From positions 47,385,571-47,449,570 of the forward strand of contig NC_068999.1 in the NCBI RefSeq assembly GCF_001194135.2: DNA of 64,000 bases, read 5' to 3'. Source of the DNA: Octopus bimaculoides. Taxonomy: Eukaryota. The position numbers and the translations under genes are program-made. Numbering within the stretch: position 1 is the stretch's first letter; each line of letters opens with the position of its first letter. Of this stretch, positions 19,400 through 52,775 are shown one piece after another. The notes under the pieces are model-generated. The model had not been told where the DNA came from. It worked only from the letters and a program-made list of their open reading frames with translations, and did no database searches.

Positions 19400-19690
19400 A
19401 ATGATGTGAAGAAGCCAGCGCTTCTGGCCAACACCGATTCCACTTTCTGCCTCGTTTCACGAGAATTTCCGGTGAAACTAATTTTCTCAACCCCGTCAGC
19501 ATTATGTTGTTTTTACGACAAATATTTCAATTGGTTTTTCAAACCATTTAAAGAACCAAGTGTTTGGGTAATCTGCGATTGTGATTTGTGAAACTAGAAA
19601 AATATTTTGAACTACTGAAAATGTTAAGATATTTCTGATGGAAATCGGGACGAAGACGTATCTGTTATGTTAATGAACATGAATTTAAAT
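19400..19690 (-). promoter_or_regulatory. Probable promoter/5' UTR of the rhodanese gene
   Basis: CpG-retaining segment directly upstream of the ATG. ETS-type ACCGGAAAT on the minus strand at 19465-19473. Confidence 0.45.
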
Positions 19691-19694
19691 ATAA

Positions 19695-20967: not shown

Positions 20968-21012
20968 GAAGAAGAAGAAGAAGAAGAAGAAGAAGAAGAA
21001 GAAGAAGAAGAA
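20968..21012. repeat. (GAA)n microsatellite followed by TA/CA-rich simple repeats (to ~21465)
   Basis: Directly visible. Confidence 0.95.
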
Positions 21013-21230
21013 ATAAAGCTAAAAGTAAAAATAGATATAAAAATAGTAATGGAGAACATAGGGGAAGGAGGAGTTAAGTACACCAAGATTAAAGAAATGG
21101 AATATTTTGGATTGGTCAAAAGTGGTCCTACCCCATATTGAAATAAATTTGTTTGAAATTTTAAGGTGTTTCCATTATTTTGTCTAACAGGGGTTGGACA
21201 TACATACATACATACATACATACATGCATG

Positions 21231-21264
<34 letters not shown>

Positions 21265-21465
21265 TATATATACACACATATACATTCATGTATACACACA
21301 CATACATGTATATGTACATATATCCATATACACACACATATATATATATACATATATACACACACATACACATATATACATACACACATATATACACATA
21401 GACACATACATATATATATATATATACACACACACACATATATAGCCACACATTGCACACACACG

Positions 21466-28561: not shown

Positions 28562-29182
28562 ATGGAAGAAGAATTTGCTGCTGATTCAGAAGACGAACAA
28601 AGAAGCAACGATCCAATTTTGGAAAACATGGAGTGGGAATTATATAAAGCTGTCGAAGAGGGGAATAACGAGCGGTTTGTAGAATTATTAGACATGGGTT
28701 GCGATGTGGATTCTTTCTTCATCGATGAAGCAAACATTAGCACCAAATCACTTTTGCATGTTTGCTGTGAAAAGGGTAAAAAAGAATTAGTTAATATCTT
28801 ACTAGACAGAGACACCAATTTGTCCGCACGGGACAATTGGGGTCAAACTCCGCTAATGTTTTGTATTTTAGCTGGACGGACAGAAGTGGTCAAAATCCTG
28901 TTGGATCATAGGCCAGAATTAATAAATGATTCCGATAAGTATGGAGACACTTGTCTACATTTCGCTGCCCTGAACGGTATGCTGGAGTTTATGGAAATAT
29001 TGCTTCATTACAATGCACGCGTGAATGCGCTCAACCAAAACGGTTTTACTCCTTTGATGAGTGTCATTATGTCCAGGGAGATCGAATCTACCGACATACG
29101 GAAAGATGTTGTCAACTTGTTGCTTGCCGTAGGTGCTGAAATTAATCTGTACGAGCCACGTGGAAAACGTACCCCCCTACAG
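28562..29182 (+). CDS. Ankyrin-repeat/SOCS-box (ASB-type) protein, variable first coding exon A
   Basis: 207 codons from ATG with ~5 ankyrin repeats (WGQTPLM, GDTCLH, GFTPLM). Ends KRTPLQ at donor CAG|GTTAGT, phase 0. Joins 40018 to give TPLQ|LAVLTKNVDVVEILLQAGADPN. Confidence 0.92.
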
Positions 29183-29299
29183 GTTAGTTGCAATTTTACC
29201 CACCTATCATACTTACCCAGTCACACTTCAAGCGATCTGAGGTAAGTGAAATTAATGTCAAAATTAAATGACATTCATCTCAAAATAATTGCTTTTTAA

Positions 29300-29362
<63 letters not shown>

Positions 29363-29395
29363 CATCATCATCATCATCATTATTATTATTATTAT
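29300..29395. repeat. (ATT)n/(ATC)n microsatellite
   Basis: Directly visible. Confidence 0.95.
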
Positions 29396-30375
29396 ATTTT
29401 GGTATCATTATAGTCAAACTGGAGAGGACAAGTTACTGCAAATGGATCTTTTATCTTTTACATAATTTTAAATAATTATTCATAAAAAATATCAAAGCTA
29501 ACACTTTTTTATATATCACTATATATATAAACAATCTGTAGGTAAAGACACATTGTTTCTTCATTACACTCAAAACTTATTTCAAAAGCATGAAAATAAA
29601 CTAAACTATCTTTCATATTGGACAAAGTTGAAACAATTTTCTTCTCTTAGTATTTTCTAGCTTCTTTCTCTTCATATCAGATTCCTTCCCCATATATATA
29701 CACACATACATTCATACATGCATGCATGCTTGTATGCATCATTGTATGTACACACACACACACAAATGAACTGATGGTATATCCCTCTTCTAAAATGACC
29801 CTGCCTCTCTGGATTTTATTCATGTATACTCGCTCAGTTGTCATTTTAAATGTCCACCTTTTGATCACCTGTTGAGTCTTCTGTACATTTTATGAAAACC
29901 TTCCCTCCTCACGTTTCTAATTTCGACTCAAAAGTTTTAAGGGGAAAAGGGAAAAGTCCATAAGTATGTGTGCAAGAGTAAGATTTGAAAACTTCTATTA
30001 ATGAAAGTGATTCCAGGGAAAGAGGTCCATTATCATATTTTTTCATTTGATATCATTTAATATTATAATGCGCAAAGACATTTCACAATGATACTTCTAC
30101 TGCGAGCATTTTACAAAATAAAAACCTAAATACTTTTCTCTTCTCTGTCAATCAGACACACACACACACACACATTAGTCTTTAGCAAGAATGTTGATAG
30201 TGACTTCGAAGTTTCGGCTTGCTTAGCCTTCATTGGGCTTCATTGCACTGTCAACACTTTTCTTGGTAAAGAATAATGGATATGTTCTCTTCAAAAAGTA
30301 TTGAGTAATCCTTTTGTTTAACGTAAAATTGTTTTATTATAAACTCAACATTAAAGCAGACATTAATTCAGACAA

Positions 30376-30397
30376 ATAGATAGATAGATAGATACAC

Positions 30398-30448
<51 letters not shown>

Positions 30449-30450
30449 GA
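30376..30450. repeat. (AGAT)n microsatellite
   Basis: Directly visible. Confidence 0.95.
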
Positions 30451-30941
30451 GATAAAGGCCAAAATATTGGAAACTTTCATATACATATCCCAGCTAAAAC
30501 AACAGAAGAAACCTTTTGTAAGCGCATCATTAGAAATCAGGTCAACAGCTGACCGCCTGGTAGGTTTGTTTACAATGTTGGGTGCTATTTCAAATTCAAC
30601 TGAAATTAAAATAAATTTGTCAATCTTGAGTAAAGGATGTTCTGTGTCTCGGGAACTGGTGACGTATTCTGGTTAAAGTCTTTCTCGGGGAATTGGACAA
30701 ATGAAGCGACTTCAAACTCAAAGTGACGGGAAGGTGTTAGAATGGATTGCACTGACATGAGAACTTGGGATGCCTATGGCGATGGCAAAAAAACAAAAAG
30801 AAGAAAAGTCTGCAGAGCCTTTCTGCAAATTAGTAACGAGAAATACCTAGAAAAAGTTGTTTGTATATGATCCCATCGCGCAATAGGGGCACGACAACTG
30901 GTTTTATTGACCAGTTACAAACACTGTCGCTAACTTTATAT

Positions 30942-31085
30942 CAGGCATTGGCAACCTTCTTCGAGAAGCTAGCAGCATGAGACATACATCATTATCAAGC
31001 GGGCAGCACTACTAAAAAGAAGAGTCGAAGCTAATTTTACGTTAGACATGCCTTTCAGAGAGTCCCACGAGCCGCAGTTGGCCAG
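30942..31085. mobile_element. Short hAT-like MITE (related pieces at ~20328-20460 and 14854-15173)
   Basis: caggcattggcaacc... and ...gccgcagttggcca ends. Internal homology to 20330-20460 (gcaacct...gaga.at..att.atc..gcgggc.gcacta). Confidence 0.5.
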
Positions 31086-31930
31086 TAACTGTCTTATGTC
31101 ATCGCAACTCAATTCAAACAGCTAAAGATACCAAACCTCATAGTCGATGTTGCTGGGGCATTTGCAACGTAACTAAGCTTGCATACCAAAAGTTAAGGTT
31201 CCTCTTCAGGATGTGAAAATGTTTCAACTCTGAATAGTTGGTGACCCTTTTGTACAAGAGTACCTCAAATCAGAATACTATTAAAAAGATCTGAGACGCT
31301 GCACATTTTAGTCATCCAAAGTAATCCAATTGATTGCAGTCATAATTTCTGTTACCGTTGCTGTTTGGAAATCATGGATATCATGATTTTCTGTTTGTTT
31401 TCCATTGTAAACAGGGGGGGGGGGTCTTTTGTTTCTGTTGATATACTATCAACAAACATATAGCTACATTACAGTTTTTTTTTCTCCCGAACCAAATAAT
31501 AAAGGCATTTCTTTGTAACCTAAATGAATATCATTAATATACTTTCATTAAAGAGAATTATTGCCCAGTTAACGAATATACTTAAATACATATATGTATG
31601 CGTACATATTATATGCATGTATGCGTGTATATATCTATACACACATGCATTCACACACACACACACACACACATATACANNNNNNNNNNNNNNNNNNNNN
31701 NNNNNNNNNNNNNNNNNNNNNNNNNNNNNNACACACACACGCACACATTGTTTAATATCGAAAGAAATTAAAAAGAAAGAGATTTAAATTTATCTTAATT
31801 CGAATATGTTTTAAAATTTAGTTTCTCAGGTAAGTTAAACAATCCTGTTGGTATGTGTATATAATGGTGATAAGAAAAATAATTCCCAAAGCGCGAAATC
31901 TGCGTACTAAAACAATTGTTTCCTCTGAAT

Positions 31931-31963
<33 letters not shown>

Positions 31964-32596
31964 ATCTGTAAATATAAATATGTGTTTATTGTCACTGTAA
32001 AGTATTTGGCATTTTGCCCAAGTTATATCTGCGCAAATTGCAAAAGCTGAAGGCCAATTGGTAAATAGCATGTAGTAATGCCGTTACTACAAGCACAAGA
32101 ATGTAGTTAAGATAACAGCGAGAAGGATTCTATGTAGAAGTGTCTGATACTAGCAGACTGATCTTGTTAAAAGAAGAGGACAACTGGCAAACTCCTCTCC
32201 TTGAAGTAAAAGCGATAGAGTTTCAACAGACTATTTTCATAATTGTGCTCTTTTCAGCTTTTGTGTTATTAGCAAGAACAGTCTCTCACGTTAGTATACT
32301 CTGCTAAGATACATCAACAAAACAATTACATATACAGATGTAGACATTTTGAAGTTATAATTTAGAATTCTTATTTCTTTATTGCCCACAAGGGGCTAAA
32401 CATAGAGGGGGACAAACAATTCTAAAATAATTTAGAATTCTATGAATATAATTATCAATTTCACTTAACAACTAAACTTATCTGGTTTTAAAATTTAAAA
32501 GTAAAGCAAAGTAAGTTCATAAAAATTAACATAACACCCTTGTTTGTTGTTGTTGTTTTTTTGGGGTCTGATTGCCAATTAATAAAACCAACCCAA

Positions 32597-33145
32597 ATGG
32601 ATATCACAGACCAAGATGTGGCCATGCTGCTTGCCATAGAAGACGACGATCCGGTAGCGCTGCGGGAAATTTTAAAAATGGGAGCTGAGGCTGACACATA
32701 TTGCTATGATTTGAACGGTATTCCATCCAAATCAATGATTCACATTGCATCGGAAAAAAGTCGGTTGGAATGTTTGAAAGTTTTACTGGATTACGGCGGA
32801 TCAGCGGATGCCAGTGACCGCTGGGGTCAAACACCACTTATGTACAGCATCATGGCAGGAAGACGGGAAATTACCGAATATTTACTGGAAAAAGAACCTG
32901 GTTTAGCGAAAGATTCTGATCACAAAGGGAACACGCCTCTTCATTGTGCTGTGCAGGCTGTATGTCACGAAGACATCAAGTTAATTCTTAGTCGAGGAGC
33001 TGATATAAATCGCCAAACAACGAGAGGTGTTACTCCACTTATGCTGGCCTGTATAGAATATTCAGCCTCTTTGGTTAATTATTTAATTGAAGCTGGAGCT
33101 GACATCAATATGAGAGAATATAGAAATAATTCTACGGCTTTACAT
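32597..33145 (+). CDS. Ankyrin-repeat/SOCS-box protein, paralogous variable first coding exon B
   Basis: 183 codons from ATG (MDITDQDVAMLLAIEDDD...) with ~5 ankyrin repeats, colinear with exon A. Ends NSTALH at donor CAT|GTACGT, phase 0. Joins 40018 to give TALH|LAVLTK... Confidence 0.85.
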
Positions 33146-33459
33146 GTACGTAATCTTCCTCTATTTCTTAAAAAACTTTCTAGAATTCAGACCAAATGTA
33201 AGATCCAGATATTACAACTGACTTTGGGAGAATTCTCAAATCAGTTATAATTCTTTCATATAATTTTTTTATATCGGTGTCCAGATATATGAATATTCTT
33301 GTCGATTATTCCTAAAATATGTTGTTCTATTGTTTCGTGTCTCTCACGCGTATAATTACGAAATTAACTCGGCGAAGGAATTGTTTGCAATAATGTATGT
33401 ACGTACGTATGTATGTATGCTAGTGTTTATATACATACATATGTGTGTGTATATGTATG

Positions 33460-33510
<51 letters not shown>

Positions 33511-33799
33511 GTATANNNNNNNNNNNNNNNNNNNNNNNNNNNNNNNNNNNNNNNNNNNNNNNNNNNNNNNNNNNNNNNATATATAATTAGAAAATAATGT
33601 AACAAAACATGGAGGATATATTATAAATAATAAATAGTTATAATTGTGACTTGTTCATAGTTATAAACGTTCTATATATATATATATTAAAATGAAGAGG
33701 TCATGGGTCAACAGGTCTTTTGGGATCTGACGATACGCCATAAAGCTAAACCCTTTAAGGACGGGAAACCTAAAGTAATCCCATAAACCGGCCTCCGCC

Positions 33800-33843
<44 letters not shown>

Positions 33844-33909
33844 TGTGTATGTATATAAAAAATGTGTGTATGTATGTTTACATATATATACTAACATGAA
33901 CATCACATA

Positions 33910-34586
33910 CAGTGGAGTCTCTATATACGAACATAAACCGTTCAGGAGCCGTGTTCGTAAACCAAATTGTTCGTAACATTAATATTTGAAATACATATAC
34001 GTAAGGACAAACCGTTCCAAACCACTCTTAAACTCAGGTCAGGTCAGGTGTGGAAGTACACGCCATTGCAGGGCATCTCTACAACCACCGTTTGTCACTA
34101 TTTGCTCGGGTTGTCCCGAGAAACCCTCGGAAGCTGTGTCCCAGTCAGTCCTCATCTCTGCGAGATATTTCCTCATCCAAAGGCATAAAATGATGTTTTA
34201 TTTGTCTATCCGTCAATAGCAAATACCTAAATATATATTTATATGTAGATATGTGATTGAGTAAATGTGTGTGCGTAATCTACTCGTGGTTTGTTGTTCA
34301 AATTTTAGCACATTGGCTAAATCGAATTTTTTTCAGAAAATCTGTTTGCTATAAAATTAGCCAAATTAGCGTACTGTTCGTTATATGCTCTTCCTGCACG
34401 TGCGTTGTCTACATGTGTGTTTTTCAAATTTCAAATCGCAAAGCGATTAGATTCGCAGTCAGTTATATGTATGCGTAGTCCACTCGTGATTCGTTAATCG
34501 AATCCCAGTTCGTTATGCGAGTTTATTTTCTTTTTTTTTTTAACTGTTCGTTATTCAATCTATTCGTTTAGAGAACGGTTCCTCTG
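33910..34586. mobile_element. Tc1/mariner (Tigger-like) non-autonomous element
   Basis: Starts ta|cagtggagtctctatatacgaac and ends ttcgtttagagaacggttcctctg, with repeated gttcgt subterminal motifs. Confidence 0.5.
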
Positions 34587-34799
34587 TGGGTATTCCATTA
34601 TACATACATACGTACATACATGCATACATATATACATAATTCATGCATACATACATACATACATGTCTATTTCTCTTTCTTTTTTCTCCTTTTTCCAGCA
34701 TGCCCGATTACAAATCTCCCTCCCCCTTCTTTCTACCTCTCCTCTGAAACCGTTTTTTTTTTGTGCCAACCAGATGGTGGGAATGCGCGTGCGAATTAA

Positions 34800-35235
34800 T
34801 GGATGGATTCTGAGAACTTTCAGTACAAGGAACCAGGAAACTGTGCTGGTTCAATAGAGGACATTTGTCCTCAGCTGTCTGGGCTACTGCCTTCAAACGT
34901 GGTCACCCCAGAATGTCAAATTAATAGCAGAACTTGAGGCAGTTCAGTGGTCCTACACCAGGAAGATTGCATCAATGGAACAGCTGAACTTCTGAGAGAG
35001 ACTGAAAGACCTACGATTCAGCTCCTTGGAGCGAAGACGGGAAAGATAGGCAATGATATACGTATGAAAGATCCTGAAGGGTTGGCACTAAACTGTGGCA
35101 TCGAGAGCTATACCAGCTTCCGAACTGGACGTCACTACACTGTTCTCACCCATCCCGTCTAGTGTGAGGACCAAGTACTGCAATAACTTGAGATTCAGGG
35201 GCCCACAGTTATTTAATGCTTTGCGTGACATCTTG
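34800..35235 (+). mobile_element. CR1-type LINE 3' fragment
   Basis: Translates to LEAVQWSYTRKIASMEQLNF*ERLKDLRFSSLERRRER, the typical post-RT CR1-group motif. Confidence 0.75.
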
Positions 35236-35239
35236 AACA

Positions 35240-35608
35240 GGTGTCTTCTACTATAACCTCGGGCCGACCAAAAGTCTTGTAAGTAAATTTGGTAGATGGA
35301 AACTGAAAGAAGCCCATCATATATATATGCGTATGTGTGTGTTTCTGTTCATTTGTGTTTGTCCTCCATCACCGCTTGATAACCGGTGTTGGTGTGTTTC
35401 TGTTCATTTGTGTTTGTCCTCCATCACCGCTTGATAACCGGTGTTGGTGTGTTTATGTCCCCGTAACTTAGCGGTTCGGCAAAAGAGACTGATAGAACAG
35501 GTGTCAGGCTTTAAAAAGCCCTGGGGTCGATTTGTTCGACTAAAACCCTTCAAGGTGGTGCTCCAGCATGGCCGCAGTCAAACGACGGAAACAAATAAAA
35601 TAAAAGAA
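35240..35608 (+). mobile_element. SINE family A with an internal ~57-bp tandem duplication
   Basis: gtgtttctgttcatttgtgtttgtcctccatcaccgcttgataaccggtgttg occurs twice in tandem. Confidence 0.85.
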
Positions 35609-36169
35609 TGTGTGTGTGTGTGTGTATTTTTGTATGTATGTATATTTTCTACATCGTAATTAATCGAGGTCAAACTGGAATCTAAGGGAACACGAATCAT
35701 AATAAAACTTCCGTGTTATTTTATTTATTTATTGTTATTGTTCACTGTGGTAAAAGAGGTTTGGTAGAATCGTAAGAACATCGGGGAAGCTTCATTCAGT
35801 GGGTGGGGTCGATAAAATAAACAACCAGTCAAGTATCGAAGTAGATGGTTATTGACTTAACTCCACCACCATCAGCCCATTCATTTCAAAATTGCTGGTT
35901 TTGTGCGAAAATTGGAAACAATTTGTTTGTTTGTGTGTGTGTCTGTGTAAGGAGTAATGGTATGTGTGGGAGGTGGGGGTGTTTGGGTGCGAGTGTCTAT
36001 AGGGGGGGATATCGATATGCGTGTGGGGGTTACATGTTTGTGATGTGTGTTTGTGGGACGATTTTTTTTTGTGGGGGTACGTATAGTGGTGGTGGTGGTG
36101 AATGTGTGTGGGGGCGGGATTCGTGTGTGTGTGTGTGTGTGTGTGTTCATGTCAGACGGGGTAAATTAT

Positions 36170-36330
36170 TCTTTTCTACTCTAGGCACAAGGCCCGAAAT
36201 TTTGGGGGAGGGAGGGGCAGTCGATTAGATCGACCCTAGTACGCAATTGGCACTTGATTTATCGACCCCAAAGGATGAAAGGCAAAGTCGATCCCAACGG
36301 AATTTGAACTCAGAACGTAAAGACAGACGA
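36170..36330 (-). mobile_element. SINE family B
   Basis: ttcttttctactctaggcacaaggcccgaaattttgggggag...ggatgaaaggcaaagtcga...ggaatttgaactcagaacg. Confidence 0.85.
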
Positions 36331-37696
36331 TGCCAACCATCCAACCCATGATGGAAAACAGATGTTAAATGATGATGATGATGACAGGAAGTTATTTGGT
36401 TCTGTGGTGTTTTCATTGGTTACATAGTTTATTTCTTGTGTTATGAATTTTCACTCATCTTCAAAATACCTTTATGTAAGCATAACAATAAAATCTTTCA
36501 TTTAGAATTAACTTAATGAAGGATGAAACTGGCTGAAACATCAGGCAAGCAAAATTTGACAACATTAGAGTGACTTCTGTGGCATTAAAATTAAATGCCT
36601 CTGAAAAATGTTAGGATATGAAGCTCTGTGCAAGTAAAGACTGTCTATAACCAATACCAACCGCTGTTTGTACAACTGTTCATCATTACTTAATTAATAA
36701 AGCATTTTGTAAGGGTCTTAGGATCAACTTTTCTCACCAAGCAAAAAGTGCAGTTGCTATTGCATTAAATCTACTTTTTTGTTATCTTCTTATCAAATCT
36801 ATTTCATACTCAGTTAAAAAATTGTTCAACATCTTCAGTGTACATCACAAGATCAGAAAAACAATCATCAGTAAATCCACACATTCTAAGATTTAACTTT
36901 GCCACTTTTTTCCATATTTCCTATGGCTTTTTATTAAGAAGCTGCCTTCCTTGACACCTTTTTGTCGTCAAGTACACATCACATGTCCCATTAGTGCAAT
37001 AATATCTGCTGTATGTATATATGGGCCAATGCCAGAAATATACAACTTCTGTCTCAGTACACACATATTCCATCAACTGTGCTAGTTAATATCACATCTC
37101 CAATAGTTCATGCTCACCTCATTTCTCTCTCCCTCCCTCCTCACTCTTCCTCTCTCCAGCTGCTGTTGATCTTTGACTAACCATGTTGTCTCACTACCAT
37201 GCAACATCATACAAGCTGCCTACACATAAACTGTTTGTTGTCAATGGAATTAACAGTGTCTTCATCTTCTACCACTGCTTTCCAACTGCAGTAAACTAAT
37301 GTTTTATGTAAAACCTTCTCTATCATTAGTCACGTCACATAAATAATAAAGAAACCATCGTTTACTGATAACGACCCTGGTATATCCTGCTTTATTTGAA
37401 GTTCTGCTTCTCTGTCAGCCTGCCAGAAATCTTCCTCCTTGTGTACTCAAAGCTTGCACTGAATTCACAATATTAAGTTTCTACCTATAATCAAGGCCAC
37501 TTTCCAATAGAATTATGTGTTTTCTCTTAGGAATTATCTTTTTTTTTCTGGGTGCTCCAGACAATTCTTCATTGTCTTGAATTTTTTCTTCAGTTCTTTG
37601 ACAGATTTGCTATGGAAGCATGGTCATCAGAATATAAATGTTCTCGAGAAAACCACTTCTGTATTATAACCTAAAGAAACATAATTCCTCACTGAG

Positions 37697-38085
37697 GCGC
37701 AGGAGTGACTGTGTGGTAAGAAGCTTGCTTACCAACCACATGGTTCCGGGTTCAGTCCCACTGCATGGCACCTTGGGCAAGTGTCTTCTACTATAGCCTC
37801 AAGCCAATCAAAGCCTTGCGTGTGGATTTGGTAGACGGAAACTGAAACAAAATTGTCATATGTAAGTGTGTGTGTGTGTGTGTGTGTGTGTTTGTCCTCC
37901 ACCACCACTTGACAACTGGTGTCGTTTATGTCCCCATAACCTAGTGGTTCAGCAAAAGAGACTGATAGAATAAATACTGGACTTTTAAAAAAATATGTAC
38001 CGAGGTTGATTCATTCAACTAAAAATTTCTTCGAAGTGGTGCTCCAGTATGGCCATAGTCTAATGAGTGAAACAAGTAAAAGATA
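37697..38085 (+). mobile_element. SINE family A, full length
   Basis: gcgcaggagtgactgtgtggtaagaagcttgcttaccaacc...aatgagtgaaacaagtaaaag. Confidence 0.9.
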
Positions 38086-39774
38086 TGATGGACATCTTTA
38101 TTTACTGCAGGTCCATTGGAAATTCATAAATCTTTTGGATAATCTTTGTAGGAATTTTAGATATCTCTATCAGGTTTTTATTATGCATATAACAGCTGGA
38201 AGATTTCCAGATCATGTTGGATGTAGACAGCCTTGAGAATTATAAGAGTTATTTAGAGCACCTTAGACATTGCTAAAAATATAGGCAGGACACGTATTTA
38301 AAAAAATTTAACATTGTTAAATTACTAATCTGTTGCTTTTGCTAGGTTTTTTTTTCAAATATCAAAGTGTTCCAGAATAAAAATGAAACAAAACAGTGAG
38401 TATGAAATGTAAAAAAAAAAAACTGCATTTATCACACACACATACACACACCAGACATTGTATAAATATGAGTTTACCATGTGAGAAACGTTCTCATTAC
38501 CAAAAGATTCATAGCCAAACAAGTTTTGTGTCTTGTCAGTGGTACCAAAACATAATTGATCAAATAAACACAAGGTGTGTCTCCCTTTATTTAATCCTTA
38601 AGTATTTACATTACTCTGTCAAAAGTAAAACTTATTTATTCACATTGTTTTGAATGAATCCTGCATTATCTCATAGCTTTGAAATTTTGATGATGTGAGT
38701 GTATATTTCTAGAATGACATTGTTTGGTAAGTGTGAGAGGCCAGATCTGGTCAGTATGAACATAAAACAAATAGATTATTAGGCCATATATGGCCAATTT
38801 AAATGCTTAATGGTTAAGGCTCAGGTTGTACCAGTAGCTTAAATTGAATGTGTGAATATTTCAATTTTTTACTCAGTTTCAATCGGTGCACCCAGTGTAA
38901 CCTTGTGTCTATATATAGATTAGTGTTTCTCAACCTTTTTACCCTTGCATAACCCTTAAAATAAATTACATGTCTCAAGGAACCCCTGCACACAAAAAAA
39001 TTATATACTATATCTTTCTCATATATTTTTCATCGTAGTTCATGTGGTAAATATCATATATATATATATGTATAGTCAAAATAAGCAACAAGGATATCCA
39101 AAGTTAATGCAGTACAATCGTTTCATGCGACTCCATTTATTTAAGCAATGTGAACATTACATCAAATATAGAATGTAGAGCAATCTTCAGCTGCACAAAG
39201 ATATAGAAATTTAATGAAATTACATTTCAACAGAAGGACATATTTTTGTAACTACATCTAAACTCTCCAAGTAGAAAGGAAGAATACAAAAAAACCATTT
39301 TGACTTAGCCAGACCATACAGGCTAGTAAATAATTTTAAGCAGATTTTTAAGTGTCACTGATTTTATTTGTTTCTTTGTTTCTGATTTATGGACTATCTT
39401 ATCAGACCTAGGGATTCAAAGCTTAAGGGGACACTGGCATTTTCTTTGTAGGGTAAGGGGTAAACATTGTAGACAGTAAACAGGATTGCTCTGCATTTTA
39501 CATTTGATGTAATGTTCACATTGCTTAATTAAATGGAGTCGCATGAAACAATCGTTTGCATATATGCATGTGTGTGTGTGTGTGTGTTACTGCCTCCTTG
39601 CCTTGACATCACATGATAGTTGTAAGCAAGTGTCACTGTCATACAGGTGTGTCCTTCATTTCTGATCTTCTGTTAAGACATGTCTGGCCTTGCTTGGAAA
39701 CAAGTGTGGAATGGCAAAGAGAAGAGCATCTGGCCATAGAAAATCTGCCTCAACAAATTCTGTTTGACCGACGA

Positions 39775-39807
39775 TGACGATGATGGCAATGATGATGATT
39801 GTGATGC

Positions 39808-39849
<42 letters not shown>

Positions 39850-39925
39850 CGACGACGATGACAATGACAATGATGGCAATGATGATGATTGTGATGCCGA
39901 TGGCGATGATGATGATGACTGATGA
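39775..39925. repeat. (GAT)n-rich compound repeat ~90 bp upstream of the constant-exon acceptor
   Basis: Directly visible. Confidence 0.9.
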
Positions 39926-40017
39926 TGAGTGATAGTCGTCTCTACAGAAAAAGGTAAACATTTTAAAACATATTAACATGTTTTAATAACTTTTCTGTTT
40001 TTGTTTTTAACTTCCAG

Positions 40018-40336
40018 TTGGCTGTGCTCACCAAAAATGTTGATGTTGTTGAAATCCTCCTTCAAGCCGGAGCCGACCCTAATATGGCTGACAGGTCTGG
40101 CAAGATTCCCCTCACAAACTGTATCCTTGAAAATATCACGGTAAAACAGGAAGCTGGAGTTGCTCCTGACATTGATGCCAATATCCAATCTATGATATTT
40201 TTACTGACTCAGGCAGGAAGTAATTTAAACTTGACAATGTGTGAATATAGCCATCCTTTGATATGTGCAGCTTTTGTTGGTTCGGCTGAATTGGTTCAGT
40301 TTTTTATTGACCAAGGTTCCATTCCAAACATGGTGT
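40018..40336 (+). CDS. Ankyrin-repeat/SOCS-box protein, constant exon 1
   Basis: Pyrimidine tract + TTCCAG acceptor. Reads LAVLTKNVDVVEILLQAGADPN...SHPLICAAFVGSAELVQFFIDQGSIPNMV. GTAAGT donor at 40337, phase 1. Confidence 0.93.
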
Positions 40337-40563
40337 GTAAGTATTAGTTTCTTGAATTTCTTCCCTTCGTATCAATTAAAAGTGGAGGCGCATGGTGTAG
40401 TCGTCAGGGTGTTGGACTCCTGATCGTAAGATTATGGTTTCAATTCCTGGACCAGGTGATGCATTATACTTTTTGAGCAAATAGCTAAATTTCATATTGC
40501 TCCAATCCACTCAGCTGATAAAAATAAATAATCCTGCAAGATATATATATATATATATATGTG

Positions 40564-40635
<72 letters not shown>

Positions 40636-40671
40636 TAGATATAGATATATATATTTATGAATTAATAGTCA

Positions 40672-41083
40672 TTTCAAATTTTGGCACTAAGCCAGCAATT
40701 TAGGGAGAAGAGTAAGTCGATTACATCACCCTCAGTATTCAATTGATAATTGTCTAATCAACTCCAAATTTGAACTCAGAACATAAAGCCATGTGAAAGG
40801 CTGCTAAGTATTGAACTCAGCATGCTAACAATTCTGCCAGCTCACTGCCTTAATTTAAGAAATGATATTGATTTCAAATTTTGGCACAAGGCCAGCAATT
40901 TCGGGGGAGCTAGTAAGTCAATTTGATTGACCCCAGCGTTTGAGTGGTATTTATTTTATCAACTCCAAAAAGATTAAAGGCAAAGTCGACCTTGATGGAA
41001 TTTGAACTCAGAATGCAAAGACAGACAAAATACCGCTAAGTATTTCACCTGGCATGCTAATGATTCTTCAAGCTCACCACCTG
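40672..41083 (-). mobile_element. Two adjacent SINE family B copies; the second is flanked by a ~17-bp TSD
   Basis: aatttaagaaatgatat (~40853) / aatttaagaaataatat (~41084) bracket the second copy. Confidence 0.8.
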
Positions 41084-41879
41084 AATTTAAGAAATAATAT
41101 AAAAAGTTAAATGTGGCAGGTAAGGAACAAAAAAGAGAAAAAAATGTTCAAGTAGATAAAATATCAAAGAGGAAAATTAAAATTGGCATGGCAGGTAAAA
41201 TTATTCATTCAAAGAGAAGTGTGTTGAAAATCTACGTGAAACAATATGAGAAAGTCTTTTCTTTGATTTTCGTGTGTGTGTGTGTGTGTACGTGCATGCG
41301 TGAAATAGCCACAAAATATGCTTACAGAGAAAATGCTGTATGAATGGTTGAAAGAACATGAGACATTGATTCAGCTAAATGGTGTGTGGTTCTCTAATAG
41401 ATAGGCAAAATCCCTCATTTATTGTTTGGTGGAGGAAAACTGTGACTGATGAACAATGATCAATGAGATGTCAAAGAAAAATTAGTGACTGACAAGCTAA
41501 ATGCATGATAATGGAACCCACCAAACAACAAAACTCTTAGTCAAATTGATGACTTTATCATATTTAATTTGATAGAGCAATGAGGCGTCTGTAACTGGTG
41601 ACATTATAGTCAGTGCCAAGTCACTACATGAACACCACCTAAGAATCAAAGTTTCACAGAATCCAAAATAATGAAAAGAAAATGTGAGTATGAATATTCA
41701 AACTGAAGATTAGTTTCATTGCCCTTGTGAATGTAATGTCTTGACCTTCTGGTCCATCCCAGTTCAGCTTGAGATGCATGAGGAGCTCCAATTAATCTTT
41801 CTTGCTAACAGCTCTTCATACAAGGGAAAGAAATGTAGAAGCTTGTCCTCCATAAAAAAAATATTATTTTCAAATGGTC

Positions 41880-43010
41880 AAATGGTCAAGTCAGATGCTG
41901 GCCTTTGAAGAATAAGATGCAATATTTGGGATATTATGTGCAACTTTATACAGCCTTTGGTATGATGGTTGATGTGCTTTGCTGAAAGATTCATACAAAA
42001 GCATGAATGAGTCTTCTCAGTTCTTTTGGTGCCATTGAAATACTTTGATGTGGACCGATTGAAGAGATGTCTGACATGTGTTGTGTCAGTCCAGATGCTT
42101 GGTTGGATCTTGTGACGTAGTTTCTGAGTTATGGGTGACTAAGTGTCCAGGTAGCCTAAGTGTACTTCCATATACCAGTGGTACAACTTGTCTCAGCCTT
42201 TATCATTGCATGTAAACCATGTAAAACAATGGGAACAAGCTCATGCCAATGGTCAGGGTTATGTTGTGCACAGAGAGCAGCCTTCAGTTGTTGATGGAAC
42301 CTGTTGACCGTTTCATTGGCCTCAGGCTGTAGAACATATATGTTGATATCCAAGGTCTGTGAGTGCAGGGAAAAGGGTAGATCCTAACTGCAAGCCTAGG
42401 CTGTGTATGATAATAGACGGAAACCAAACTGAAAAATCCAGTTTTGTAAATAAAGTTCATGCTGCTGTTTCCACTGATATATCTTATTTCTTTATTGCCC
42501 ACAAGGGGTTAAACATAGAGGGGACAAACAAGGGAATTAAGTCGATTACATCGACCCCAGTGTGTAACTAGTACTTCTTTTTATTAACGAAATACCGCTA
42601 AGCATTTTGACCAGCATGCTAACGTTTCTTATTTCTTTATTGCCCACAAGGGGCTAAACATAGAGGGGACAAACAAGGACAAACAAAGGGATTAAATCGA
42701 TCCCAGTACGCAACTGGTACTTAATTTATCGACCCTGAAAGGATGAAAGGCAAAGTCGACCTCAGCGGAATTTGAACTCGGAACGTAACGGCAGACGAAA
42801 TACCACTAAACACTTCGCCTGGCGTGCTAACATTTCTGCCAGCTTGCCTTCCACTGATATATCTGTGATGGGAAGAGACCCTGGTCATGTCAACATGTCC
42901 GTGCATGTCAGTGGTCTGCACAAGCCATCAAATAGAAGTAATTTTCCGAAGGGACAAAGGATCCAATCAAATCACTCCCTATGTGTTGGAACCTAGCATC
43001 TGGTGTAATA
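41880..43010 (-). mobile_element. Degenerate Ty3/Gypsy integrase relic, interrupted by a SINE B dimer
   Basis: Minus-strand pieces PDARFQHIGSDLIGSFVPSENYFYLMACAD, PEANETVNRFHQQLKAALCAQHNPDHWHELVPIVLHG and QPSYQRLYKV match the rve core and GPY/F motifs. Multiple stops/frameshifts. Confidence 0.75.
42485..42848 (-). mobile_element. SINE family B dimer with a single 16-bp TSD
   Basis: ttccactgatatatct at 42469-42484 and 42849-42864. Confidence 0.85.
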
Positions 43011-43221
43011 AACATGTCAGGAGATGATTTCACATCTTGGTTAATTTTTGCATGACAACATTTCAAGAAGTACCACACCCATAAGTGTACAGTATGATTA
43101 ATTCCTGGCCATATATACCTTGCAGTAATTAATTTCTGTACATAACTACACCAGTACCCATAGATGAATACTGTACATTAAGTAAGAAACAGAGACTACC
43201 ATTCAGTAATAATACTGCCTC

Positions 43222-43468
43222 TTCTACTTGTTTCAGTCATTAGATTACAGCCCATGCTGGGGCACTGCCTTGAAGAGTTTTGGTCAAACAAATTGACCCT
43301 AGGACTTATTCCATTGGTCTCTTTTGCTGAACCAAAAAGTTATGGGGACATAATCAAACCAACACCAGTTGTCAAGCAGTGGTGGATGACAAACATATAC
43401 ACAAAGATGCAGACACATAGATATATACATATATATGCATATATGTATGTATGCATGTATGTATGTAT

Positions 43469-43506
<38 letters not shown>

Positions 43507-43650
43507 ATATATATACATTTATATGATGGGCTTCTTTCTATTTCCATCCACCAAGTCCACCCATGGGACTATAATAGGAGACACTTAACCAAGATGCCAC
43601 TCAGTGGGACTGAACTCAGAACCATGTGGCTGGAAGCAAGCTTCTTATCA
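43222..43650 (-). mobile_element. SINE family A
   Basis: Reverse-complement match including the central TA microsatellite. Confidence 0.8.
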
Positions 43651-44014
43651 CACAGCCACGTCTGTCACTAATATCTGACTTTTGCTTGGCCTGTTGGCAA
43701 TGGTGATACTAATGACTGAATAGTCAGTGTTTCTCACCATATTTTGGTGAAAGCGAGATTTGGTCAGCATGTTGTTATTGAATACCTGCCTTAGGTGAAA
43801 TGCAAAACTCACTGAAATCAAGTGATATAGTAGTTCCACTACCAGTGCTGAGCGTTTCTTGTCTGCTTCTAATATCTCTGAGCTTCTATGCACTAAACGT
43901 CTGTATGTGTGACTTTCCCAAGACAAGTACTGCAGTATTAATGTGCTCTTATAATACATCCACGTTAAGTAGGATAGAGAGACTGTTATACATATATATA
44001 TGCATATACATACA

Positions 44015-44230
44015 TCATCATCATCATCATCATCGTTTAACGTCTGCTTTCCATGCTAGCATGGGTTGGACGATTTGACTGAGTACTCGTGAAACCGGAT
44101 GGCAACACCAGGCTCCAATCTAATTTGGCAGAGTTTCTACAGCTGGATGCCCTTCCTAACGCCAACCACTCAGAGAGTGTAGTGGGTGCTTTTACATGTC
44201 ACCCGCACGAAGGCCAGTCAGGCGGTACTG
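44015..44230 (-). mobile_element. RTE 3'-tail repeat (family C)
   Basis: Near-identical to 21466-21660. Confidence 0.85.
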
Positions 44231-45664
44231 GAATATACACTTGCACCCACACCTGTGAGCATGGTATTGCCTGAAATATCAAGGAGCTAAAATTAACTAA
44301 CATGTGAGAATCACCTTTGAATTGATTCTTTTTACTGCACCAGATGTCATCACCGTGCATACACTAAAGCCTACCATCCTCAGGTTGATGGAATGGTATG
44401 TGCATGTTTGTATATGTGAGAGAGAGAGAGTGAGAGAGAGAGAGTTGTAAGCTTGGGTTCTTGTGCAGCGAAGATATAACAGAAAAAATACCCACTAAAA
44501 TGCTATTGTATCATGAGTAAGATGGAAGCAATGTCAAAGGATTCCCATGGGAAGATACAGGGGTCACTGATATGTTGGATGAATGGAAGATCTTTCCAAC
44601 ACCAAACTGAGCAACCACAAACCTCCTTTTAAGATCCAAGAAAGGTATGATAATTCAGTGTTAGACAGGTATATATGATTTTTTGAAGATAAAAGCTGCA
44701 CTGTCTTAAATCAACTGGAGATTGCTAGAAAAGTGTAGGCCATGTCTTCACAGCAGCAGAAAGCCAAAGGAATTATCCTGAAGAATTTGCTTTACCTGTG
44801 GACCTTCCTAAACTCTAGATACAAAATTTTTACCCCCTGCCTTCATGAATGGAATTATATTTTCACTAATTGATCTAGTCCTCCATACCAGTCATATCTG
44901 GCATTTGGCCCTATTGGAATTATTTTCCTCCCTTTCTTATGTATTTTGACACTTATTCTTTTCTTTCTTCCAATCTCCTCTTTATTTATTTCTTTTCTCT
45001 TATAAGTCTCGTCCTCCATTTGTCTCCCTACCTTCCTCCCCATTCTCTCTCCTCTCACAATTTTGCACTCGCTTTATCGCATTGCCCCACCACACATCTC
45101 ACCAATACACATACACGCTTACAATATAATACATACATATAAAACTCCTTCACAAACCAGCTCATTAGCTCCCCATCTCCCACCATTCCTCTCTTTCTCT
45201 CACCCTCTCCTCATAACACTTCACCCTACTTCATTCGTATACACACACACATGCAATGAAAATTCTTTGCACATTGGCCTCGCCTGCTGGGTTTCCTTTT
45301 GACTGCATAATCCAATCCAAGGGACATAACTCTGGAAGAACTAGACCTAGCATTTCATTTTGTCTGCACCTATTTTCAACGCTTTTTTTTTTTTTTCGGT
45401 TTCTTTAATGCAGCCAAAAATTGTATTGGCTTATTAGCCAGACCTTTACTTTTATACCTTCACTGCAAAAGAATCCAAGCATTAGATTTCCAGTTGACTA
45501 CGTCTGATGATTATACAATTATTCTTACCTTTATATAATGAACTTACATAGTGTTCAGGTGCACTTACAGCTCATCAGAAAAAGTAATCAAAACTACATG
45601 AACAGTACATAGAATATAGACATGCACACTGACGTACAAACAAACAAACAAACAAAAAGAACGC

Positions 45665-46072
45665 AGAAATAATACATTTCTAAATCTCTCAGAGAGATTT
45701 ATGCAGTAGTGATATGATGAAGTAGTTGTATGCTGTCAACTTAATGTGACAGTCCCATGAAGGGAATAATACTACTGTTGGTTAGACCTAGGAAGCTGCA
45801 TCGCTTCCTGTCGGCCTTGACACACTTCCTGTGTCCTTATGTTTACAAGGGGGAGACAAGCACCTCCACTCAGCTAAGCCTGCATCCAGATTCAGAAACA
45901 TGTCTCTGGACGCAGGCTTAGCTGGGTGGAGGTGCTTGTCTCCCCCTTGTAAACATAAGGACACAGGAAATGTGTCAAGGCCGACAGGAAGCAGTGCAGC
46001 TTCCTAGGTCTAACCAACAGTAGTATTATTCCCTTCAGGGGACTGTCACATTAAGCTGACAGCATACAACTA
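45665..46072. mobile_element. Foldback/MITE-like element: 58-bp leader + 350-bp near-perfect inverted repeat
   Basis: Arms 45723-45890 and 45905-46072 (168 bp each, 7 mismatches by hand count), with a 14-nt loop. Confidence 0.9.
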
Positions 46073-46399
46073 TTTTCAAAAAGAAGAATGCAGCTCTGAA
46101 AATGGATAGAGACAATGACAACTGAAAATGTTGCAAGATGCAATGAAAATTTTAGAAAAAATAAATAAGTAAATGAGTGGAAATCGAACTGGTGAGTGTG
46201 TTAAATAATAAGGCACTAAAAGAGAATGCCTCTCCCCAAATACAATAAAATCTATGGAAACTGTCTAACATTTATCTTTACTTCCAACTCATTGCAATTG
46301 TGAAATTTTGTAATGGTTCAATAAAATCTCTACTATGTTACTTTGAAAAATTTTAATGAAACAAACTGACTCCTATACTTATATTTTTTTAAAACCCGG

Positions 46400-46660
46400 T
46401 ACTTTTTCTATTGGTCTCTTTTGCTGAACTGCTTAGTTATTGGTACATAAGCACACCAACACTAGTTGTCAAGGACAAACAAAGACACACACACACAGAT
46501 ACAACAGGCTTCTTTCAGTTTCCATGTCATCCACTCACAAGGCTTTGGTCACCCTGAGGCTAAGGTAGAAGACATTTGCTTAACGTGCCACACAGTGGGA
46601 CTGAACCCAGAACCATATGGTTGAGAAGCAAACCTCTCACCACATAGCCACACCCGCACC
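46400..46660 (-). mobile_element. SINE family A
   Basis: Reverse complement: ggctgtgtggtgagaggtttgcttctcaacc... Confidence 0.8.
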
Positions 46661-46770
46661 TTTCAGTTGATGAGTTGATTTTAATTAACAGTTCTGTAAT
46701 AAAATACTCTTGCATATGATCTAACTACTCAGTTTGATTAATTTTTATTTCAATTTGTTTCTTTTTCTAG

Positions 46771-47216
46771 TTCCGTCTGGCGTTACACCAATCCTTACTG
46801 CTGTCAGCCGTAATCAAATGAATGTGGTTAAACATTTACTTTATTGGAACTGTGAGTTTCAGAATCGAGGTAGAATCTCTCGCAAAAGAATTGATTATTA
46901 CTTCGATCCTTTTGAACTGGCTATCTTCATGAAACACTGGGAAATAGCAAAACTTTTACTTTTTGCTGGTTATCAATGGAAGGCAGGCTTAGTTGAAAAT
47001 AATGAAGACCTCAGAAACCCACTACTTGCATGTGAAGAAATGGCAAAATGGTACACAGACTATACACGCACAACGCAATCACTTCAGTTTTATTGCATCA
47101 GGACGATTCGATTATGTTTCGGTGGAAATATTTCCCAAAAACTGAAGAGTTTGAAACTTCCACCTTTCATTAACAACAAAATTCTTTTAAATCATTTGCT
47201 CTCAGTCGACAGCTAA
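46771..47216 (+). CDS. Ankyrin-repeat/SOCS-box protein, constant last exon with SOCS box
   Basis: Acceptor TTTTTCTAG. Phase 1 gives (F)PSGVTPILTAVSRNQMNVVKHLL (ankyrin), and C-terminal QSLQFYCIRTIRLCFGGNISQKLKSLKLPPFINNKILL is a BC-box/cullin-box SOCS motif. TAA at 47214-47216. Full CDS is 461 aa (A form) or 437 aa (B form). Confidence 0.93.
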
Positions 47217-48595: not shown

Positions 48596-49427
48596 AAAGT
48601 TGAAATGCAAGGAAACTTAGTAGATTGGTAAAATAGTAAAAAAAGGTGAAGAAAAGAAAAGAAAAGAAACAAACGATGGGAAGAATGACAATAGCGTATC
48701 AGTGAAGAGAAATACTTTGAAACTAAAAGAAGAGCAAAATTTATATTTGTGTAAGGTCTGGTTCGCTTACCTTAAATGTAGAACTAAACAGGTTTGGCTA
48801 TTTTAAGCGAAGGAGAAAGAACAGGGACCCAGAGAAAGTGTTTGTTCTCCAAGTGGGTAGAAAGCGCTGCCCACAGCACTTGTAGTAAGGATGATTAAAA
48901 GTAACATTAACTCTTTAGCATTCAAACCAGCCATATCCTACCCGAATATTCTACTTGTTTTATGATCAAACTGGCCAAATCTGGCTTTTCATACCTGCTC
49001 TACAATGTCATAAACTATCACTTCATCATCATAATCTTGAAGCTATGAGATAATGCATGATTGTTTCGAAGCAATATAAATAAATAAATATTACATTTGG
49101 CAGAATAATCTGGATGCTTAAGGGCTAAAGTAATTTGGAACTAATTTGTTACAGCAGTAGTAACCATCATTTTGGTTTATCATTCCAGTTGGTCTGATCA
49201 GACACTCCACATATTGCTTATTCATTGAAGAACAATAAAAAAAACCATCATGAAAAATTAATCATTCTTTAACTCTTTTGTCCCATAATCTCAGCGCTAA
49301 GGGGCTAAACAGGCATCGACTGCAGACTGAAGTTCCTCAGCATCAGATTTGGACTGACACAAAACTGAGAAGAATGTGAGCGGCATCTATAATTGGAAAG
49401 ACTTCATTTGTATCATACATATAGGTG

Positions 49428-49837
49428 CAGGAGTGGCTGTGTGGTAAGTAGCTTGCTTACCAACCACATGGTTCTGGGTTCAGCCCCACTGCGTGGCACC
49501 TTGGGCAAGCGTCTTCTACTATAGCCTCGGGCAGACCAAAGCCTTGTGAGTGGATTTGGTAGACGGGAACTGAAAGAAGCCCGTCGTATATATGTATATG
49601 TATATANNNNNNNNNNNNNNNNNNNNNNNNNNNNNNNNNNNNNNNNNNNNNNNNNNNNNNNNNNNNNNNNNNNNNNNNNNNNNNNNNNNNNNNNNNNNNN
49701 NNNNNNNNNNNNNNNNNNNNNNNNNNNNNNNTGGGGGTACAACCCACTAAGGGATAGTATCTATCCAGTATACTGCTGGGAGGGTACCCAATTATTGCTA
49801 CACTAGTGCTATACTAGGTGCAATCAATGGGAGCGGG

Positions 49838-49868
<31 letters not shown>

Positions 49869-50098
49869 GTGTGTGTGTGTGTGTATGTGTTTGTGTGTCT
49901 GAGTTTGTCCCCACAACATCGCTTGACAACCGATGCTGGTGTGTTTACGTCCCTGTAACTTAGCGGTTCGGCAAAAGAGACCGATAGAATAAGTACTAGG
50001 CTTACAAAGAATAAGTCCTGGGGGTCGATTTGCTCGACTAAAGGCGGTGCTCCAGCATGGCCGCAGTCAAATGACTGAAACAAGTAGAAGAGTAAAGA
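49428..50098 (+). mobile_element. SINE family A halves separated by microsatellite/N gap
   Basis: caggagtggctgtgtggtaagtagc... (5' half) and ...aaatgactgaaacaagtagaagagtaaagag (3' half). Confidence 0.85.
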
Positions 50099-51992: not shown

Positions 51993-52775
51993 ATTATTAT
52001 TGTTGTTGTTGTTGTTGTTTTTTCTCAAGATGGTTCCATAAGAACCCGGTTACTTTTCTACTCCGATGGAAAGCTGCATCTAGTAGCCTTAGGTGTCAGA
52101 GTTAATTAATCAAGTACCAGTTGAGCGCTGGGTCAAAGTAATTGACTAAGCCCCCTCCCCTCAAAATCTCATGCCCTCTTCCTACAGACGATAGGATTAT
52201 TACTAAGTTAAGTAAAAAGAAAAGGAGAAAGAGAAGGAAAGAAAGAAGAAAAAAGAAAAAGAAAAGGAGTGTTATCATTATGGCGAATAACATTGTGGCC
52301 ATAAAAATCTTGTCAAGAGATGTGATGACACCTTTTAGTGGACTACTAGAATGCTGTCGTCCAAATTTATATGGGTAAAGGCGTGGCGGAGTTGAGGTCA
52401 AGGTGCCAATACACAGGCATGCTTACGTACGTCTGCACACCAACTCTCGTATATTTAGGGTCTTACCATTTGTTATACTGCTCATTGGCCCTTCAAACTT
52501 ACTGTTTTGATTGTTTTTGTTGTTTATATTTTTTTACTACTAGCTTTTCTATTTCGTTGAACTCACTGCCGTGTTTTGGCCGACTTAGAAATTCTCTGCG
52601 ACTATGTAGTCTTCTTTAAGGTAATCTCAACTTGATGATTAGCTACAGCGAGTAGAGTTTATTACATAATAATTGCATCATGAGCTTTGGCTAGTTAAAA
52701 AACATATGTAGTGTATATTTTACGTATTCCATTCCCTCAATTTGGATGTGTGTGTGTGTGTGTGTGTGTGTATAC

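Follow-up and report, generated by a model that had tools for sequence, protein, structure and literature searches.

In the UGT1A locus of vertebrates, a tandem row of paralogous first coding exons is joined to the shared exons 2-5. Every one of these first exons has a start codon and a 5' splice site of its own, and none has a 3' splice site; the variable exons encode the substrate-recognition half of the product and the constant exons the effector half. The clustered protocadherins (alpha and gamma) of vertebrates also have a variable-first-exon/constant-exon layout with promoter choice, in which dozens of variable exons are used stochastically in neurons. E3 ligases usually gain substrates through duplication of a whole receptor gene, and vertebrates have 18 ASB genes. 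The subject of this work is a locus of Octopus bimaculoides in which a gene for a predicted ASB-like SOCS-box protein carries several paralogous, self-initiating first coding exons upstream of one pair of constant exons. It is located in a window of 64,000 nucleotides (nt), the whole stretch of DNA that was analysed (contig NC_068999.1, positions 47,385,571 to 47,449,570 of the forward strand), and coordinates below are those of the window unless another locus is named. While the layout is read directly from the DNA, we consider it probable, at roughly three chances in four, that it represents one ASB-type receptor gene with a 5' cluster of tandemly duplicated, mutually exclusive first coding exons, which would be selected by choice of the transcription start site and would give receptors that have partly differing substrates or act in different cells.

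UGT1A has been treated as a tandem-exon-duplication substitution cluster, and the cluster status of the clustered protocadherins has been cited in the same study (PMC9741552). In tandem duplicated exon substitution, homologous exons are used one at a time, and the known cases are mostly ancient and conserved (PMC9741552, PMC8373072, PMC9013439). ASB proteins serve as CUL5 substrate receptors; the substrate of ASB9 is bound by its ankyrin repeats, and its SOCS box is the part that docks on Elongin B/C-Cullin 5 (PMC7280518, PMC3779351). Alternative N-termini have been described in ASB2, where the alpha and beta forms have the same SOCS box and beta adds 48 residues with a ubiquitin-interacting motif (PMC8042406).

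Variable and constant exons of the octopus locus

The first variable coding exon, exon A (28562..29182, + strand), begins with an ATG and encodes an acidic tail at the N-terminus, five whole ankyrin repeats (1-5) and the opening third of repeat 6. This exon is stop-free over 207 codons from this ATG, which has an in-frame stop 6 nt upstream, and it ends in phase 0 with ...GKRTPLQ at the donor CAG/GTTAGT (slashes mark exon boundaries). Exon B (32597..33145, + strand), a paralogue of A, likewise begins with an ATG and covers the same interval, from repeat 1 to one third of the way into repeat 6; it is open throughout its 183 codons and ends ...NSTALH, again in phase 0, at the donor CAT/GTACGT. 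An earlier sequence-only reading of this DNA had taken A and B for intact paralogous first exons with about 64 identities over ~175 aligned residues, each with its own ATG and both stopping at the same phase-0 point at a GT donor. Our reading of the exons agrees, and BLASTP returns 64/178 identical residues (36%) with one 7-residue gap and an E value of 8e-38, far beyond chance.

Constant exon C (40018..40336, + strand) has the acceptor TTCCAG/TTG and the phase 1 donor T/GTAAGT; it finishes ankyrin repeat 6 (LAVLTKNVDVVEILLQAGADPN) and then encodes the next repeats. Constant exon D (46771..47216, + strand) encodes the last ankyrin repeats, a linker and the SOCS box and closes with a TAA at 47214-47216. 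The exon C donor and the acceptor TTTCTAG/TT at 46771 give the C-D join ...IPNMVF-PSGVTPILTAV.... As the sequence-only reading had it, the window holds a single acceptor exon at 40018: tblastn finds one copy of C in the whole window, D is likewise single, and no further copy of A, B or C was found in a six-frame search of the whole window. The predicted products, A-C-D of 461 aa and B-C-D of 437 aa, have the lengths first proposed, while the end of exon C had to be moved from 40338 to 40336. The proposal that either join rebuilds an ankyrin repeat is borne out by a Pfam Ank match that spans the junction in each isoform, at residues 203-232 (isoform A) and 178-208 (isoform B).

This locus resembles UGT1A in that at least two tandem paralogous first exons with an ATG and a donor precede one shared constant set, as observed at the octopus and cuttlefish loci. 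It differs from UGT1A, which has about 9-13 cassettes with documented individual promoters and tissue-specific use, in having two or three cassettes, in belonging to another protein family and in that its individual promoters are putative. The variable-first-exon/constant-exon layout is likewise that of the protocadherins; unlike theirs, the octopus variable exon ends inside a repeat and so does not form a domain by itself, and it is not known to be used stochastically or in neurons. As with ASB2 alpha and beta, one ASB-type gene would give receptors with different N-termini and the same SOCS box, whereas in ASB2 the ankyrin repeats are shared and there is no duplicated cassette. Most catalogued cases of exon substitution concern internal exons of similar length that are chosen by splicing, as opposed to first coding exons of about 200 codons, probably chosen by start site, at this locus.

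Conservation in cephalopods and age of the duplication

The locus was compared with its counterparts in three other cephalopods, all gapless: Octopus vulgaris (L001), Argonauta hians (L002) and the cuttlefish Acanthosepion pharaonis (L003). In O. vulgaris, the exons lie at 10001-10621 (A), 16220-16768 (B), 32535-32852 (C) and 46550-46990 (D) of L001, and in Argonauta hians at 10001-10621 (A), 16819-17367 (B), 19426-19743 (C) and 22205-22645 (D) of L002, so that the order is A-B-C-D in both. The order in the cuttlefish is A-X-B-C-D (L003: A 256-876, X 20798-21379, B 32313-32873, C from 36643 and D from 43838), and C and D are single everywhere. Cassette X, located between A and B, has 194 codons, its own ATG and the donor CAG/GTGGGT, and is 34-37% identical to A and B. 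It is also intact in a second decapodiform (ENA ERZ21867824; L011 10001-10585), where tblastn gives 84% identity and the reading frame reaches the same end point, where the next codon, a valine, fits a GT donor. No remnant of X was detectable in the octopod loci, and an exhaustive HMMER search of X against 1.84 billion representative proteins recovered no members of the family, its list being dominated by giant multi-ankyrin proteins. All nine cassettes from the four species start with an ATG, are stop-free and end T-x-L-Q/H followed by GT in phase 0. Exon A of O. bimaculoides is 91% identical to its orthologue in O. vulgaris, 71% in Argonauta and 57% in the cuttlefish, with the GT donor kept in all, and for exon B, intact in the four species, the corresponding values are 92%, 67% and 59%. 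Thus the cross-species tblastn comparison proposed in the sequence-only reading finds the A-B-C order conserved in octopods and cuttlefish, with the cuttlefish cassette in addition, and the concern that B might be pseudogenised in relatives has not materialised.

These loci also bear on whether A and B could be the first exons of two ordinary tandem genes, the other constant exons having been collapsed or lost in assembly gaps. Of the 11 gaps in the window, two fall within the locus, and O. vulgaris has introns of about double the length found in the window, which speaks for such a loss. Neither of the two gaps touches an exon, both being intronic. The first (31680..31730) lies in the A-to-B interval, intronic for A transcripts and upstream of B; its flanks are colinear with gapless O. 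vulgaris, and the non-aligning stretch around it (31654-31780) corresponds to only about 185 nt there. The second (33516..33578) lies in the B-to-C intron between (TC)n and (TA)n simple repeats. No ankyrin-like open reading frame (ORF) was found in the O. vulgaris intervals matching the two gaps (the second being L001 17148-23189), and the window is colinear with the O. vulgaris locus at 87-93% identity, introns included. In three other species, represented by three independent gapless assemblies, exactly one C and one D follow two or three cassettes, and the products of O. vulgaris and cuttlefish have identical C-terminal halves. A collapsed tandem pair is ruled out because the gapless O. vulgaris and Argonauta hians loci show A-B-C-D with a single C and D, and we give next to no credence to a two-gene origin of the layout; the sequence-only reading had named separate constant exons or a misassembly as what would overturn it, and the gapless loci carry neither a second C nor a second D.

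When the sequences were placed in a neighbour-joining tree, the orthologues of A and those of B, four each, separated into two clades with 100% bootstrap apiece, and therefore the A/B duplication is, on the sequences compared, older than the octopod-decapodiform split. This split dates to roughly 250-300 million years ago. If the reading of promoter-linked cassettes is true, the arrangement has been kept since before that time. Identity is 30-44% among A, B and X and also between each of them and the orthologues from bivalves and gastropods, and the deep nodes that join them with the outgroups lack resolution, so that neither the ancestral cassette nor loss as against gain of X is inferred from the tree.

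The outgroups, the snail Lymnaea stagnalis (L005 10001-14110) and the mussel Sinanodonta woodiana (L010 10001-23328), have a single N-terminal region each. The five-repeat N-terminal region, which is one exon in cephalopods, is encoded by three exons in Lymnaea and two in Sinanodonta. Both outgroups have a phase-0 intron right after R-T-A-L-H as well as an intron at the C/D position, and since these two downstream intron positions are shared, the boundaries of the constant exons are ancestral. The fused and duplicated cassette was found only in cephalopods among the species examined, and from this comparison of gene structures intron loss in the 5' half seems to have come before or along with the tandem duplication. 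A different pattern is seen in the unionid mussel Potamilus streckersoni, where CHS0354_015629 (P0212) and CHS0354_015628 (P0213) have consecutive locus tags on the same contig and are apparently adjacent whole-gene copies, nearly identical in their middle segment and different at their termini. This pair looks like an ordinary tandem gene duplication, possibly with gene conversion, which contrasts with the cephalopod route.

Between O. bimaculoides and O. vulgaris, the ratio of nonsynonymous to synonymous differences (pN/pS) comes to 0.25 in A (p 2e-5), 0.41 in B (p 0.02) and 0.32 in the constant exons (p 0.001). Between O. bimaculoides and Argonauta, synonymous sites are near saturation (pS 0.72-0.76) while pN is 0.16 for A, 0.19 for B and 0.11 for the constant exons; for B taken by itself, pN is 0.186 and pS 0.717 (p 4e-27). 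With pN well below pS for both, the codon comparison indicates that A and B of the octopus are under purifying selection, in line with the earlier suggestion that their deep divergence with intact ORFs reflects selection on both cassettes. The same comparison addresses the idea that B, and X in the cuttlefish, are silent relics of an exon duplication in the first intron that are never translated. This idea draws on the assembled public run contigs, in which the only spliced mRNAs are of the A type (38 index blocks for A, 0 for B or X). Against it, the frame of B (183 codons), its ATG and its GT donor have been kept intact in the four species despite saturated synonymous sites, which would not be expected of an untranslated relic; in addition, X is intact in the second decapodiform, and the B isoform has been modelled by both RefSeq and the O. 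vulgaris annotation. We thus regard a relic as highly improbable.

Predicted products, gene models and transcripts

In each isoform, Pfam detects Ank_2, Ank and Ank_4 at E values of 1e-31 to 1e-53. The AlphaFold2 models of the two are continuous solenoids, with a predicted local distance difference test score (pLDDT) of 88.2 for A and 90.5 for B and a predicted template modelling score of 0.82 and 0.84, and the 10-residue blocks around the joins have a mean pLDDT of 94-96 in isoform A and 93-95 in isoform B. In both models, three short helices are placed at the C-terminal end, in the SOCS box region. The SOCS box lies at 47076..47174 (+ strand; residues 416-448 of isoform A). The patterns S-L-x-x-x-C-x-x-x-I (BC box) and L-x-L-P-P (Cul5-box-like) can be read straight from the sequence, with a BC box of S-L-Q-F-Y-C-I-R-T-I followed by a Cul5-box-like L-K-L-P-P-F-I-N-N-K-I-L-L. 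Of the 15 family members, 14 have a match to PF07525 at E <=0.1 (best 2.5e-5). When a profile of the family's last 62 residues was searched against the PDB, six matches had E <0.01, all of them SOCS boxes of ASB9, ASB7 or ASB8 (E 1e-4 to 2e-3), and the sole other match had E 0.63. Foldseek with the full isoform A model and PDB searches with the full-length profile or the constant region were dominated by DARPins and ankyrins and were uninformative on the SOCS box.

The gene is accordingly filed as an ASB-like SOCS-box protein, a predicted class that lies below the single-sequence Pfam threshold. Members of the ASB family (ASB1-18, with solved complexes of ASB9) combine ankyrin repeats at the N-terminus with a SOCS box at the C-terminus in which BC-box and Cul5-box motifs occur, as does the octopus protein; the octopus SOCS box differs from theirs in falling under the Pfam cut-off, and its docking on CUL5 is putative.

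Both products are already present in public databases. Isoform A is identical to XP_014769069.1 ("ankyrin-1 isoform X1", Octopus bimaculoides) and isoform B to XP_014769070.1 ("ankyrin-2 isoform X2", Octopus bimaculoides), which RefSeq treats as isoforms of one gene, and the same X1/X2 pair exists in O. sinensis (XP_029648208.1 and XP_029648209.1). The names "ankyrin-1" and "ankyrin-2 isoform" are misleading, and ASB-like SOCS-box protein is a better one. In O. vulgaris, consecutive accessions represent products of 461 aa (CAI9737019.1), 437 aa (CAI9737020.1) and 443 aa (CAI9737018.1). Exact look-ups of the proteins P0003, P0124 and P0128 gave no match, which for P0003 fits a shorter product of the gene of P0001.

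Two of the public models describe further forms. An older annotation of O. bimaculoides divides the locus into three models, namely A with a mini-exon, B as a read-through ORF and C-D alone. The first of these, A0A0L8HVC1, joins exon A to an 11-codon terminal mini-exon in the A-B interval (30945-30980, + strand; acceptor TATCAG/GC), which encodes ALATFFEKLAA and then a stop and would give an ankyrin-only product; this region is 93.5% identical in O. vulgaris, no better conserved than the adjoining intron. In CAI9737018.1 of O. vulgaris, splicing proceeds from inside exon D to a distant 3' exon (L001 64701-64808), giving a product without the SOCS box. The counterpart in the window consists of an internal donor TG/GTACAC (47037-47050) and a 3' stretch at about 52543-52652, where the orthologous sequence has an earlier stop, and so the tail is not conserved as protein. 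A natural variant without the SOCS box has been described in human ASB9, which CAI9737018.1 resembles (PMC2852384).

Direct evidence for splicing comes from four RNA contigs of a cuttlefish about 96% identical to A. pharaonis, which contain an uninterrupted A-type ORF of 464 codons and align to the genome in exactly three blocks (A, C and D), with X and B skipped. A is thus spliced to C and C to D in the cuttlefish. The 5' untranslated region (5' UTR) of this mRNA is colinear with the genomic DNA upstream of A over at least 255 nt, and therefore A is a genuine first exon. The B-to-C junction is indirectly supported by the RefSeq X2 models in two species and by the O. vulgaris isoform, which comes from a transcript-driven pipeline. 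In that annotation, alternative forms were added by PASA updates, and the PASA assemblies were made from Iso-Seq and RNA-seq (PMC10700109). Of the two junctions that the sequence-only reading had put forward for checking in RNA, the one leaving A is therefore seen in cuttlefish contigs, as A to C to D, while the one from B to C has appeared in public models only and not as a spliced contig.

Proposed choice of the first exon and predicted substrate surface

In the mechanism that we propose, each cassette would contribute its own ATG, repeats 1-5 and the first third of repeat 6, and C and D would supply the remaining solenoid and the SOCS box. Since the cassettes have a donor and no nearby acceptor, a transcript that starts at A could only skip B, and one that starts at B could only use B, so that the choice of cassette would be made by the transcription start site, by analogy with UGT1A and the clustered protocadherins. 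This would yield two or three receptors that use a common Elongin B/C-Cullin 5 scaffold but differ in the surface of ankyrin repeats 3-5, and that may recruit partly different substrates or work in different cells.

The predicted surface of the solenoid falls into two parts. The surface of repeats 1-2, an invariant W-G-Q included, is the same in A, B, X and the bivalve and gastropod orthologues; at residues 59-71 and 92-95 of isoform A, the predicted target-facing I-S-K, E-K and W-G-Q are almost invariant across the family, which points to a recognition element that all its members have in common. Of 29 predicted surface positions, 10, most of which lie in repeats 3-5, have a residue that is kept in three or more of the four species of each clade and that differs between A and B, examples being K-Y-D as opposed to H-K-N and P-R-K-R as opposed to Y-R-N-S. 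This predicted pattern fits a shared anchor in repeats 1-2 combined with a variable specificity patch in repeats 3-5.

Several findings weigh against the reading of start-site-chosen cassettes with differing substrates. The Pfam SOCS box profile PF07525 scores 14.3 and 15.2 bits on the two octopus isoforms (E 0.05 and 0.03) and does not reach its curated cut-off of 23.5 bits. A spliced B-to-C or X-to-C transcript was sought in the public RNA contigs and none was found. The contigs that contain B or X end in intron read-through (P0209, P0210), and the B contig that was aligned (L012) runs colinear with genomic sequence. They thus represent either unspliced RNA or genomic DNA and give no evidence of splicing. 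The first octopus annotation has B as a stand-alone read-through ORF of 217 aa and C-D as a separate gene. When the 300 nt upstream of B were aligned in the four species, conservation was found only between the two Octopus species, which are about 90% identical in introns too, and therefore no promoter motif can be claimed upstream of B. At DARPin-type binding positions, A and B do not diverge significantly more than at other positions (Fisher p 0.40 and 0.49). Lastly, with the I-S-K and W-G-Q surface of repeats 1-2 common to all cassettes, part of the recognition surface may be shared.

The original O. bimaculoides annotation contains precisely the model expected if B were a stand-alone ankyrin-only protein, encoded by a gene nested in the intron, with translation running past the donor as far as a nearby stop and no link to the SOCS-box exons; the unspliced or genomic contigs from another Octopus and a cuttlefish, in which B is followed by intron sequence, are also in keeping with it. 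However, the read-through tails differ between Octopus (VRNLPLFLKK...) and cuttlefish (VCKIQTIILL...) and so are not under selection, B halts one third into an ankyrin repeat that only exon C completes, and the GT donor stands at the same codon boundary in all species. A nested stand-alone gene is therefore very unlikely in our view.

The layout could also be real and the cassettes be chosen by mutually exclusive splicing from one shared upstream promoter and a non-coding exon. Mutually exclusive splicing of tandemly duplicated exons is indeed a well-described class (PMC9741552, PMC9013439). On the other side, the 5' UTR of the cuttlefish A mRNA, colinear with the genome as described above, makes A a true first exon. 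The DNA upstream of the B ATG is free of AG acceptors over about 55 nt in the octopods (three species) and over about 40 nt in the cuttlefish, and in none of the four species does one follow the pyrimidine tract there. We consider splicing from a shared promoter unlikely, and choice by start site the better account of the layout.

Another possibility is that both isoforms are made and bind the same substrates, the duplication having divided expression by tissue or stage and not specificity. The surface of repeats 1-2, which A, B, X and the outgroups have in common down to the W-G-Q, would be expected in that case, as would the lack of divergence enrichment at the binding positions. However, A and B are only 36% identical, the 10 of 29 surface positions that are clade-conserved and A/B-different are what different ligands would predict, and the distance between A and B is about equal to the distance of each cassette from the bivalve orthologues. 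A division of expression alone is thus somewhat unlikely, and receptors with at least partly different substrates remain the preferred reading. In its most extended form, which we put forward tentatively and hold to be a possible rather than a probable account, this reading describes a coleoid Cullin 5 receptor whose recognition module comes from promoter-linked cassettes, two in octopods and three in cuttlefish, by which cell types may aim one scaffold at different substrates.

If this is true, a variable-exon cluster in the style of UGT1A or the protocadherins would, to our knowledge, be described here for the first time in an E3 ligase receptor, and we know of no vertebrate ASB in which paralogous ankyrin cassettes serve as alternative first exons. 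In the literature, no paper was found on this layout, on an ASB or SOCS-box protein in octopus or other cephalopods, or of relevance on the first exons of ASB10. The novelty claimed in the sequence-only reading was nevertheless overstated: the layout is undescribed in the literature found, while the proteins were already RefSeq X1 and X2 and N-terminal isoforms were known for ASB2 (PMC8042406). The value of the discovery thus lies in recognising the layout, its age and the third cassette of the cuttlefish, the products having been public under uninformative names. As opposed to the duplication of whole receptor genes, in the cephalopod route only the distal ankyrin half has been duplicated, and the copies would share one putative ligase-docking tail. 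This amounts to a natural domain swap, in which the same SOCS box and proximal repeats are combined with two or three distal ankyrin surfaces that appear to have been kept apart by selection from a time before octopuses and cuttlefish separated, and it offers a tractable system for asking which of the ankyrin repeats determine the specificity of an ASB protein. Variable-first-exon loci, of which few are known, also gain a further example, from a lineage noted for its unusual means of protein diversification.

Some minor features of the window remain to be described. None of three other long ORFs in the window has a Pfam family. A (GAT)n-rich microsatellite (39740-39930), one frame of which reads as poly-Asp, stops some 90 nt short of the exon C acceptor on its upstream side. 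Copies of a dispersed repeat about 380 nt long occur at 35222-35600, 37695-38083, 49419-49606 and 49852-50096, and in more than 10 copies in the O. vulgaris locus L001. This repeat, which is like a short interspersed element in size and copy number, sits in introns of the gene in both Octopus species, and together with simple repeats it accounts for much of the difference in intron length between them.

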